DNA from: Chara braunii
Taxonomy: Eukaryota > Plantae > Charophyceae
Direction of reading: 5' to 3'
NCBI GenBank assembly: GCA_003427395.1
Contig: BFEA01000003.1
Coordinates: 9,339,840 to 9,403,839 of the forward strand
DNA: 64,000 nt
The position numbers were made by a program, and so were the translations under genes. The notes under the pieces are model-generated. The model was not told the DNA's origin and made no database searches. It was given only the letters and a program-made list of their open reading frames with translations. Shown here one piece after another: positions 44,623 through 47,785 of the stretch (position 1 is the first letter of the stretch; each line of letters begins with the position of its first letter).

Positions 44623-47600
44623 GTGAGACGGTGCTGGATCATGCAAAGCGCTGAGGAGGTGATGCTTGATCTCAAACGTAATTCATCTTCTCTTCATGGC
44701 CATGCTCCTCGCAGTGTTGATTTCACAAATATGTATACCAATCTTCCTCATGACCGTATTTGTCCTAATGTATCAAAAGCGGTTGAGGAAGCCTATACAT
44801 ATGCCTTACAACTGCACACACAGGAGCACACACATCCTCCTACCCTTAACATGATTGTTAAAGGGCCTGTCAAGGGGAGCGGACGGTTGATACCGGACCG
44901 AACACCTTGACCGTTTCCCAAATTCTTGAAGATCTCCATTTCATTGTCACAAACACGTATATTAATGCAGTGGATGGCACCTTGTGACATCAGCTGATTG
45001 GCATCCCGATAGGGACTAATTCTGGTCCGGAGATATCTAATTTGACGTTGTATTGGGATGCGGCTTGATTTGTTGATGACCTCCAGCGGCGTGATCTACG
45101 CGCAGCTCAACGGTATGCGTTCACATACCGCTTGATCGATGATGTTCTCTCATGGGGACATCTGCCACCACCGTCAGAGCACTATGGCCTCGAATGGAAG
45201 GAGACCACATCGCCTGATGGCTCTTGCACATTCTTGGGTGCACACCTCCAAGTCCGCCCTGACGGTTCCCTACGTATGAGTGTCTTTGACAAAGCAGCTG
45301 AATGTAATTTCCCTGTTATTCGTTATCCTACTGCTACGTCTAACGTCCCTGCACACCAGCTGACGGGAGTGTTTACAGGCCAGCTTACTAGGTTTGAGTA
45401 TGTCTGCAACAATTGGTATGATTTCAAAACTGCAGCAGCGATGCTCACACGCCGCATGCTTTTTCGCTGGCACTGTCCAACAACGCTTGCAAAAGGATGG
45501 ACTTCCTATATTCGTAAACGTCAACACATGTACCCTGTGCACGTGACTCGCTTCTCCAGCTGGTTCCGCAGCATGCTTCGATGGTCTATTCACCACCCGC
45601 TTTCTCGGGTATCCACACACTGTCCTCGGACTACGCCTTTCACAACCCCTTCTTCATTACCGGCGCCTGTCACACCTGTCACAACCTCTTCTTCATTACC
45701 TGTGTCTGTCGCACCTGCGTCCTCATCAGTCTTAGTAACCCCTTCCATGCCGTTTGTGACCCTGACTGCCCCTTTTCGGTTCGCAGCCTCTTCCTCATCG
45801 GCCTTGGTTGCTTCTACGATTGATTTCGCGGGAGCAACTCGACCCGCAACTGCTGTGTCGCCCTTGGTCTCGGTGTGTTCCTCCATGGCATCCGTGGCCA
45901 CCGCAGCTGCTGTGTCGCCCTTGGTCTCGGTGTGTTCCTCCATGGCATCCGTGGCCATGCCTGCATTACCACCTGCAGAGTCCCCTCTTCGGGTCTCACC
46001 TACGACTGCCCCCCCTGTCTCTGCTTCAGCCACTTCACCACCCCTGACTTCATCACCCCTCCCTCCCCCCCCCCCGTCTTCACCGCCGTTATTTTCCCTG
46101 GTTTTATCTCTGTCTGTTACCCACCTTCTGGCTACTCTACCACCCCTGTCTTCACAACTCTTACCTCCCCTGGTTTTGTCTCCATCCGTTACCCCTCTTC
46201 CTAATCCACAAACCACTTCGTCCACATGGAATCCGTCATCATGTTCTGCCCCTGCAGAAAGCCTACTTCGCCGTCCTAGATGCTGACTTCGGCCTACTTC
46301 CCAACCTCAACTTACTCCCCTTTCCTCCATCTTTGTTCTTGGACGAAGAACCCGTTCATTCTCCCCACCACGGCCCTCCCCAACATCCCGTCCCCGTCTT
46401 TTGCTGCCCCAAGCATCCTTACCACGCCTTCAACGCTCTTTGACTGCAGACCTTTCTGCAATGCGGCAAACACAAAATAGGAGGGATGATGGCGAGGGAC
46501 CATCCGAGGGTGAACTTGGCAAGGGGACTGTAGCAGATTCTGTAGAAAATCCGCCTGATCGGCCTCCACCGAATCTGTGTGGCCTCGCTGCTACTAACAT
46601 CTGCTTACAAACCTATCGTCGGGAACCATATACTCACTCTGATTTCTTGGCCATTGCTTCCAATCTTGATGCTCAAGAACGTGAGTTATATGGCGATAAC
46701 CCGACTTTGCATCCCCCGCAAGATAGTAATTACACTCCACATGGGGGATTCAATGTCTCTGTTTTGGAGACTGCTTTGATAAGGCGCCGACTTGATATGC
46801 AGTGTGCCCCTTCGGGTGGCAACCCGGACCGTTGTTCGCATGTTCGTGCCTATATTGTACATGCTCCTGGCCGCTACACCGCTCTTGTCTGTGCCTCTAG
46901 TTCTTGGGAATTATGGAATGGTAGTGCTATGGTGCAAACTACTACTGCCATCTGTGATCTCGTGCGTAATTTCCCTAACCTGCAACTGTTCCAGGTCATT
47001 GACCCTATGGGTACCTCGTGTACTTCCATGCCCGCCTCTACGCCTATCTCTGTGCCTGCCTTCGTACCTGTCTCTGTGCCTGTTTCTGTGTGTGTCTCCT
47101 TCCAGATTACTGACCCTATGGGTACCTCGTGTACTTCCGTCCGCGCCTCTGCACCTGTCTCTGTGCCTGCCTCCGCACCTGTCTCCATGCCTGTTTCTGT
47201 GTCTGTCTCTGTGCCTACCGTCCCCGCCTCTGCATCTGTCTCTGTGCTTGCCTCCGCACCTGTCTCCATATGCCTGTTTCTGTGTCTGTCTCCGTGCCTA
47301 ACTCCATGTCTGTCACCGTGCCTGCTTTAGTATTCATTGCCCCACATACTGCACTAACACCTTGTGACCTTCTTCTTTGTGAGATCACTGACACAGTTGC
47401 ACTTGGTTGTGGAAAGCATCGACTTTGTCTACATCACTACAACCGTATTATTTTTTGGGCCTGCTGTCGGCAGGGTTGCCACCTGTATCCGGATTGTGAA
47501 CATCCTCTACATCCAGATGCAGTATGTCCCATCTGTGCCTGCGGGCGCTATAGCGAATGTGCACTTGACTGTGATGGTGAACGCCCCACAATCGTCATGG

Positions 47601-47785
47601 CCTGCAACCGGCATGCCCTCTGTCGTGCATGCTTCAGAGGTATGGTTAATGCTAGCCGCCCTGGATCCTGCTGTGACGAAGTTGCTTACCTGAATGGTTT
47701 TTGTCCTGTGGATCAGCGAGAGGGCTACTACCATCGCCCACATCCTTATGACAGTTGTCCTATCTGTCGTGAGGGTCTTACTTAG
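44623..47785 (+). pseudogene. PLE polyprotein remnant: RT/thumb (44623-45600), S/P/T linker, Josephin-like domain (~46570-47000), P/A/V/S linker, two RING-like fingers (~47360-47785)
   Basis: ORFs 45132-46286 and 46401-47330 are in the same frame, separated by one TGA. A 2-bp 'at' insertion at ~47270, visible against the neighbouring repeat unit, is the only break to the RING-bearing frame. There is one frameshift near 44880 and two TGA codons in the RT at Arg-like positions. Confidence 0.78.

Follow-up and report, generated by a model that had tools for sequence, protein, structure and literature searches.

The window analysed here, a stretch of 64,000 nucleotides from the genome of the charophyte Chara braunii (contig BFEA01000003.1), contains a decayed copy of a Penelope-like element (PLE) in which the reverse transcriptase (RT) is followed by a putative Josephin-family cysteine isopeptidase domain and by a Cys/His-rich tail consisting of two RING-like units. 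As delimited by blastn against a sister copy on another Chara braunii contig (BFEA01000451, hereafter L002; ~87-94% identity), this copy is ~4.0 kb long and occupies positions 44619-48650 of the + strand. We consider it very probable that it represents a dead, 5'-truncated Chlamys-type PLE of the kind published as Chlamys-1_cBra, and that the protein of active copies would combine a Josephin isopeptidase with a pair of RING fingers. The Pfam Josephin match (PF02099) above the gathering score, taken together with a Josephin fold match at an E-value of 8e-7 and the same domain order in several independent copies, shows that this combination is more than a product of chance. The preliminary description of the window, made from its letters alone, had proposed a PLE uniting an RT with Josephin and RING-like domains, and in this it proves to have been largely right.

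Organization and decay of the window copy

All parts of the copy lie on the + strand. The RT, preserved from motif A through the thumb (44623-45640), was recognized by tblastn with residues 699-1038 of P0011 (52-53% identity), one of the proteins related to the window copy that were recovered in database searches and are designated here by P-numbers. Three-frame translation of 44200-48000 places the second half of the RT and the thumb in frame 1 (44623-44907) and then in frame 0 (44862-46283), with the thumb-like stretch reaching ~45640. This is followed by a low-complexity linker rich in Ser, Pro and Thr with tandem repeats of 39 and 57 bp (45641-46520; translation and Tandem Repeats Finder), by the Josephin domain (46551-47006; PF02099, a family profile, AlphaFold and Foldseek), and by a second linker with tandem repeats of 111 and 12 bp (46989-47350; Tandem Repeats Finder, alignment to L002 and frame reading). 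The tail, which is read in the frame next to that of the Josephin domain, comprises RING-like unit 1 (47351-47557; alignments A1 and A3 and its hhalign homology to unit 2) and RING-like unit 2 with the stop codon at 47783-47785 (47558-47785; sub-threshold RING profile matches). A 3' untranslated region (UTR) of ~0.87 kb (47786-48650) completes the copy, as judged from blastn, alignment A5, RNAalifold and Tandem Repeats Finder.

Similarity between the window and L002 begins at 44619 and ends at ~48650; as the L002 copy continues upstream of this point and the window copy does not, the latter is truncated at its 5' end. A single base is missing near 44865, inside the RT, which explains the change of frame there. 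Three TGA codons lie in frame (44985-44987, 45066-45068 and 46284-46286), the last of which had been noted in the preliminary description within the continuation beyond the RT and thumb; the sister copy reads CGA, CGA and CGG at these positions, which identifies the TGAs as CpG transitions in Arg codons rather than sites of recoding. The two-base insertion that had been proposed at ~47270 corresponds to an 'AT' at 47268-47269, within linker 2, which is missing from the 91%-identical sister copy, and its removal would join the Josephin frame to that of the Cys/His units. At the position of the catalytic His of the Josephin domain (46872-46874) the window copy has CGC, encoding Arg, where the sister copy has CAC. 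The window copy is dead, and its defects are private to it. Its 5' half was lost at insertion, with later decay proceeding through the CpG transitions that turned three Arg codons into TGA, through small indels, and through the replacement of the Josephin catalytic His by Arg.

The sister copy carries a lesion of its own, a 4-bp deletion near 47283 (window numbering), so that its Cys/His part lies one frame off its Josephin domain. It also contains a ~700-bp internal inversion spanning linker 1 (L002 9667-10372) and lacks the stretch bearing the catalytic Cys; the gene model GBG83788.1 (P0001) is drawn partly from the inverted strand of this copy.

Relatives of the element and recurrence of its architecture

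In the metagenomic protein P0011 (1282 aa), encoded by a 5.9-kb contig (L001), a GIY-YIG motif close to the N-terminus is followed by C-x-C and D-K motifs, the RT, the thumb and a Josephin domain. Among the relatives scanned with Pfam, an N-terminal GIY-YIG domain was detected above the cut-off in P0030 (E 1.4e-6), in P0019 (E 3.9e-4), and more weakly in P0011, P0014, P0022 and P0026, and a C-x-C motif followed by D-G-H-V is present in P0011, P0018 and P0020. The absence of both the GIY-YIG and the CxC elements from the window copy is attributable to its truncation at 44619. The Pfam scan detected no GIY-YIG domain C-terminal to its RT, in agreement with the preliminary description, which had taken this to fit either a permuted (Naiad/Chlamys-type) PLE with an N-terminal endonuclease or an endonuclease-less PLE; the permuted type is borne out by the domain order in the RT relatives. 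No hammerhead ribozyme was detected in the whole window at gathering scores, or in 47700-48750 at E-values up to 1. Truncation at the 5' end is shared by the window copy, by a second copy in the window and by copy c on the Chara braunii contig BFEA01000033 (L003); the second of two copies in L002 begins within ~120 bp of the end of the first. A (CA)n repeat abuts the 5' edge of both the second window copy and L003 copy c, the main window copy not lying directly beside one. Taken together, the N-terminal GIY-YIG domain of the RT relatives, the lack of a hammerhead ribozyme and the (CA)n tracts at truncated copies place the element in the Chlamys group of PLEs. A search of the PDB with the RT of P0011 returned no match. 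Intact relatives encode, in a single open reading frame (ORF), GIY-YIG, CxC, RT and thumb, a low-complexity linker and Josephin, and in the Chara lineages the Josephin domain is succeeded by two tandem RING-like zinc modules. The two ends of L001 (1-140 and 5760-5902) repeat each other, which fits either a tandem (pseudo-long terminal repeat) arrangement or a circular assembly artefact.

An architecture of this kind has been described by Craig, Yushenova, Rodriguez and Arkhipova (2021; PMC8557442), whose section 9 presents Chlamys-1_cBra of Chara braunii as an N-terminal GIY-YIG PLE with a C-terminal extension that contains a weak Josephin match and then a conserved C/H motif left unnamed in that section. 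The claim of the preliminary description that no PLE joining a Josephin domain to RING-like fingers was known therefore fails. According to the published description, Chlamys-1_cBra agrees with the element described here in host species and in the order of the domains along a long ORF; both are lengthened by tandem repeats, occur as 5'-truncated copies, are associated with (CA)n and lack a canonical hammerhead ribozyme; the C/H motif without a name there appears here as a tandem duplication with affinity to the RING group. The same authors refer to a Josephin-like domain found in Dualen elements. Dualen/RandI (Kojima and Fujiwara 2005, as cited in PMC8557442) is likewise a green-lineage retroelement with a Josephin-like accessory domain, a cysteine protease for which a role in interfering with protein degradation has been suggested, but it belongs to a different class, being a long interspersed nuclear element (LINE) with apurinic/apyrimidinic-type (APE) and restriction-like (RLE) endonucleases, and no RING tail has been reported for it.

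Searches of individual loci with pieces of the window copy (tblastn) recovered the order RT, Josephin, Cys/His twice in L002 and once in L003, and Josephin with Cys/His in a metagenome contig from ENA (L004). In L003, L004 and the second L002 copy no change of frame separates the Josephin domain from the tail, and the RT and Josephin domains are joined in one ORF in P0007 and P0011. In all, this domain order is shared by at least four divergent Chara lineages. The lineages are only 30-50% identical in protein. Further 5'-truncated copies retaining the Cys/His part and the UTR occur in L002 and L003, and the window holds one as well (6290-7148, +), a deeply truncated member of a divergent lineage identified by tblastn, blastn and translation. 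Its RING pair (6290-6640) is 30.7% identical to that of the main copy over 137 residues in tblastn, its 3' UTR block (7031-7148) is 77% identical in blastn, and it is flanked by (CA)n tracts, one touching its 5' edge and another lying past its 3' UTR. Between lineages, the ratio of nonsynonymous to synonymous substitution rates (dN/dS, Nei-Gojobori) amounts to 0.15-0.17 in the RING units and 0.24-0.31 in the Josephin domain; for the window copy paired with its dead sister, the value is ~0.5-0.95, as is expected after insertion. Judged by these substitution patterns, both the Josephin and the RING modules are under purifying selection.

Viewed in isolation, the window copy, with its parts in different frames and split by repeats and stop codons, could be mistaken for a one-off chimera or for a host gene fragment lying beside an unrelated RT fragment. 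This is extremely improbable given that the same order and spacing are seen in both L002 copies, in L003, in L004 and partly in the second window copy at 30-50% protein identity, that RT and Josephin share an ORF in P0007 and P0011, and that the frame breaks are private mutations of the window copy; the chimera was rejected on the recurrence of the domain order in divergent copies. A functional role for the in-frame TGAs and the change of frame, through selenocysteine or programmed frameshifting, is equally improbable. All three in-frame stops are indeed TGA, PLEs of the Naiad type with selenocysteine codons are reported in the same paper (PMC8557442), and the Cys/His part is off-frame from Josephin in the L002 sister too. 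However, every TGA stands at an Arg codon of the sister, which is the signature of CpG decay, the indels differ between the copies (+2 at 47268 here as against -4 near 47283 in L002), and the Josephin and tail parts share one frame in three other lineages; on these grounds recoding was likewise rejected.

A conserved block of ~115 nt in the 3' UTR (48176-48291 in the main copy) was found across all lineages with blastn and alignment A5. Besides that at 7031-7148 in the window, it occurs in L003 at 18552-18669 and 13591-13698 and in L002 at 12475-12753, 14047-14133 and 15046-14924. Its nucleotide identity among lineages is 71-91%, against a protein identity of just 30-45% in their RING modules. 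RNAalifold predicts for it a long closing stem with inner hairpins, including 6 pairs with changes on both sides, and it is probably the cis element recognized by the RT. A 90-bp tandem duplication surrounds an assembly N further downstream (48306-48491; Tandem Repeats Finder). The 91 bases just upstream of the element (44528-44618) form an imperfect inverted repeat of 48720-48808, which starts 70 bp past its 3' end; this may reflect insertion into a small palindromic repeat or one bearing terminal inverted repeats, or alternatively an inverted partial insertion typical of PLEs.

Among other features of the neighbourhood, a full match to U6 snRNA lies at 22123-22223 (-; 78 bits), and a 5' partial match at 43163-43233 (+; 54.6 bits, model positions 1-72), which lies ~1.4 kb upstream of the element amid (GA)n/(CA)n tracts, may represent a fragment that was retroposed. 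At 8009-8220 (+), some 0.9 kb away from the second copy, lies a fragment of bacterial-type small-subunit rRNA (model positions 946-1215, 67.9 bits) that most likely entered the nuclear genome from an organelle. Elsewhere in Chara braunii, the models P0023, P0024 and P0009 (annotated as an amino acid transporter, an amine oxidase and a CapA-domain protein) hold RT or Josephin pieces of this family and look like gene models that swallowed retroelement fragments.

The Josephin domain and the Cys/His tail

The PF02099 profile matches residues 96-207 of the translated piece 46287-47327 with 31.8 bits, above its gathering score of 26 (E-value 1.5e-7), and the relatives P0011, P0007 and P0015 with 38-40 bits. 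A search of 1.84 billion representative proteins recovered ten relatives of the domain, several of them from Chara braunii, including a 547-aa protein whose single ORF spans RT, thumb and Josephin. All of the nearest proteins come from Chara braunii, P0001 being 81% identical. Single-sequence phmmer searches of the PDB with the Josephin, RT and Cys/His pieces returned nothing useful, and among the PDB searches with the Josephin domain only the family profile reached ataxin-3. This profile, built from eleven family members (alignment A2), matches ataxin-3 and ATXN3L chains with E ~7e-4 and aligns the family Cys with the catalytic Cys of ataxin-3. With A2 as the input alignment, AlphaFold yielded a model with a pLDDT of 84.2 and a pTM of 0.81, for which the best seven Foldseek matches in the PDB are ataxin-3, ATXN3L and JOSD2 (E 8e-7 to 3e-4, TM-score 0.59-0.74), with bacterial Josephin-like enzymes ranking after the seventh. 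The stretch that had been singled out as Josephin-like in the preliminary description is, on the profile and model evidence, a real Josephin domain at the levels of sequence and predicted fold.

The catalytic Cys is encoded by TGT at 46578-46580, and an Asn (46917-46919) lies 15 residues past the Arg/His position, with the spacing that had been proposed for it. In alignment A2, this Cys is kept in every sequence spanning its column, the catalytic His is present in 9 of the 11 sequences, with only the window copy having Arg, and Asn or Asp occupies the position at +15 from the His column in most relatives. A Pro is found at -5 from the Cys, and a conserved Asn is common at -2. The Arg at the His site had raised the prospect of a pseudo-deubiquitinase should it prove to be kept in the family; as the sister copy has CAC and nine of the eleven aligned relatives have His, this residue is a private change of the window copy and the family is not composed of pseudo-deubiquitinases. 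In comparison with ataxin-3, ATXN3L and JOSD2 (PDB: 2dos, 3o65, 1yzb, 6pgv), the Chara domain shows the same fold, an aligned catalytic Cys and, in other family members, retention of the His and Asn/Asp positions, but it is just 17-19% identical to them, is embedded in a retroelement polyprotein and, in the window copy, has Arg at the His site. In active copies the domain would be a working Cys/His/Asn(Asp) isopeptidase, with ubiquitin or a ubiquitin-like modifier as its target.

An alignment of ten copies (A1) divides the tail into two units of 60-75 residues each, which are homologous to one another (hhalign probability 98.6%, E 1.4e-15). Each has the form C...C-x9/10-C-x2-H-x2-C-x2-[C, H or D], after which come a variable loop, the conserved block C-x-H-x2-H-P and, at the end, C-P-x-C, often succeeded by Arg. 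In the window, the ligand pattern of unit 1 is C-x4-C-x9-C-x2-H-x2-C-x2-H ... C-x-H-x2-H-P-x3-C-P-x-C and that of unit 2 is C-x3-C-x10-C-x2-H-x2-C-x2-C ... C-P-x-C-R. Conservation in alignments A1, A3 and A4 covers the core C-x2-H-x2-C-x2-[C/H/D] together with the closing C-x2-C; the spacing of the first Cys pair is unusual, and extra conserved Cys and His residues are present.

Scanned alone in seven copies, unit 2 matches zf-RING_5 in 7/7 (best E 6.9e-5) and zf-C3HC4_3 in 6/7, and all eight families matched belong to the RING group, with no other zinc-finger family among them. Unit 2 of the window copy itself matches zf-RING_2 (E 0.0063) and zf-RING_5 (E 0.0099, over the full profile), and the L002 tail gives a RING match with E 3.4e-4 (21.0 bits against a gathering score of 27.9). 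The language-model neighbours of the tail that have a name are all RING proteins (scores 0.79-0.89), which we take as a lead only. Neither the single tail sequence nor alignment A1 found a homologue in a protein database within the allowed length range, which excludes longer fusion proteins, and the tail profile had no match in the PDB. In comparison with RING-HC (C3HC4) fingers as represented by zf-RING_5, zf-C3HC4_3 and zf-RING_2, unit 2 shares the pattern C...C-x9/10-C-x2-H-x2-C-x2-C...C-P-x-C, whereas the first Cys pair of the Chara units is spaced by 3-4 residues instead of 2, the sixth ligand of unit 1 is His or Asp, the C-x-H-x2-H-P block is an addition, and the scores fall below the gathering thresholds, the likeness being one of sequence. 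With these differences allowed for, we interpret the tail as two divergent RING-type fingers in tandem, to which a further conserved C/H block belongs; the pair may recruit a ubiquitin-conjugating enzyme (E2) or bind other partners of the ubiquitin system.

C-terminal proteases of related elements and the possible role of the modules

The relationships of the window copy were examined in a quick maximum-likelihood tree of 24 RT rows, rooted on P0030 and P0031, in which TERT, LINE and canonical PLE references are absent and the window row is read through three breaks with X. The window copy falls in a clade of N-terminal GIY-YIG PLE proteins supported at 100 (SH-aLRT). The Chara copies with Josephin and RING modules form a clade (96) that is sister to a metagenomic clade with Josephin only (99), and the two sit with bearers of C48 and OTU domains inside a clade supported at 100. 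A search with the RT of P0011, combined with Pfam scans, showed that relatives with 44-50% RT identity differ in their C-terminal domains: P0020 has a Ulp1/Peptidase_C48 domain (26.5-27.1 bits against a cut-off of 20.7), P0021 a Peptidase_C48 match with E 0.015, and P0019 an OTU-like domain with the Cys box D-G-D-C-F-F-H, whose nearest solved chains are viral OTU domains. The metagenomic relatives with a Josephin domain stop ~20 residues past it. Within the C48/OTU clade, P0017, P0018 and P0019 have in common a short C-x2-C ... H ... C motif, located after the thumb and before the protease domain, to which no Pfam family was matched.

Josephin, Ulp1/C48 and OTU families specialize in ubiquitin or ubiquitin-like isopeptide bonds. 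That sister lineages hold Ulp1/C48, and probably OTU, at the same C-terminal position is the main argument for an isopeptidase role of the Josephin domain, and the presence of three ubiquitin-family cysteine proteases at one position argues that protease activity itself is selected. As a tentative and rather doubtful extension of this, the PLE clade may keep a C-terminal slot for a remover of ubiquitin or ubiquitin-like modifiers, filled independently by Josephin, Ulp1/C48 and OTU, to which the Chara lineage would have added a RING pair, giving an "eraser plus writer"; retrotransposition would then depend on the editing of ubiquitin or SUMO marks on the element or on host factors at the insertion site.

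With respect to mechanism, active copies would produce one polyprotein, in which the Josephin domain would remove ubiquitin or a related modifier and the RING pair would engage an E2 or other partners in the ubiquitin system. Acting together, the two modules might adjust the ubiquitination of the element's own protein or ribonucleoprotein, or of host factors at the insertion site, and the element might thereby escape degradation or restriction. Removal or addition of ubiquitin at chromatin or DNA breaks could be imagined as well, purely as conjecture.

Several observations weigh against the combined reading as a Chlamys-1_cBra-like PLE with an isopeptidase and a RING pair. The oxyanion Gln of ataxin-3 has no counterpart in the family, with no conserved Gln before the Cys in alignment A2, as the preliminary description had suspected from the window copy. 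The RING-like fingers of that description stand in so far as the two Cys/His units are a feature of the family and match solely RING-group profiles; on the other side, every one of these scores is below the Pfam gathering score, each unit has three extra conserved C/H residues that would be superfluous in a classical RING, and the AlphaFold model of the tail, with two short strands and then a helix after C-x2-H, is unreliable (pLDDT 48.5) and too weak for a fold search. The RING pair is evidently dispensable for a Josephin-bearing element, given the metagenomic relatives that have Josephin only, and the OTU-like domain of P0019 is itself sub-threshold (E 0.0024). Moreover, the likeness to Chlamys-1_cBra is drawn from its description rather than from an alignment to its consensus, and as several Chara lineages are just 30-50% identical in these domains, the window copy may belong to a different subfamily.

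The uncertainty of the RING assignment leaves some room, in our estimate a possibility but a doubtful one, for the tail being a zinc-binding module for nucleic-acid or target recognition, directed for instance at the RNA of the 3' UTR block or at microsatellite DNA, and not a ubiquitin ligase (E3). As Chlamys endonucleases are described as lacking the CCHH and CX2-5CxxC fingers of other PLEs (PMC8557442), a binding module elsewhere in the protein would be plausible, and the constant company of the tail and the conserved 3' UTR block, the C/H residues beyond the eight RING ligands, the want of an above-threshold RING match and the poor model are all in keeping with it. Set against this, unit 2 matches RING-group Pfam families and no other zinc-finger family in 7/7 copies, and its named language-model neighbours, though a lead only, are all RING proteins (0.79-0.89). 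The final C-P-x-C of the tail, often with Arg next to it, also presumably resembles the E2-facing end of active RINGs, which weighs against a module for binding alone.

For the protease, the main alternative is self-processing, in which the Josephin domain would be chiefly a cis-acting enzyme that cuts its own polyprotein at the linkers, by analogy with the papain-like and OTU proteases of RNA viruses, deubiquitination being secondary or absent. The placement of the domain within one ORF of ~1800 aa, with a long low-complexity linker on either side, is what such a function might require, the viral OTU domains nearest to that of P0019 are suggestive in the same direction, and the swapping of cysteine protease families at one position would suit processing as well. 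We nevertheless consider it unlikely, in view of the general specialization of all three families in ubiquitin and ubiquitin-like isopeptide bonds, of the linkers, in which no cleavage motif of the Gly-Gly type and no ubiquitin-like domain was seen when they were read by eye, and of the metagenomic relatives, which end so soon after the Josephin domain that nothing downstream is left to release.

The element type is thus already known (2021), and the window adds one more dead copy of it. What is new is that the "weak" Josephin homology of the element gains support at the fold level, a catalytic triad conserved in the family and signs of purifying selection, that the unnamed C/H motif of Chlamys-1_cBra becomes readable as a tandem pair of divergent RING fingers, which leads to a testable E3 hypothesis, and that Ulp1/C48, or probably OTU, domains occur at the same position in metagenomic relatives, which suggests repeated recruitment of ubiquitin-family proteases. 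Intact copies in Chara would offer a natural system for asking why retrotransposons carry such enzymes.

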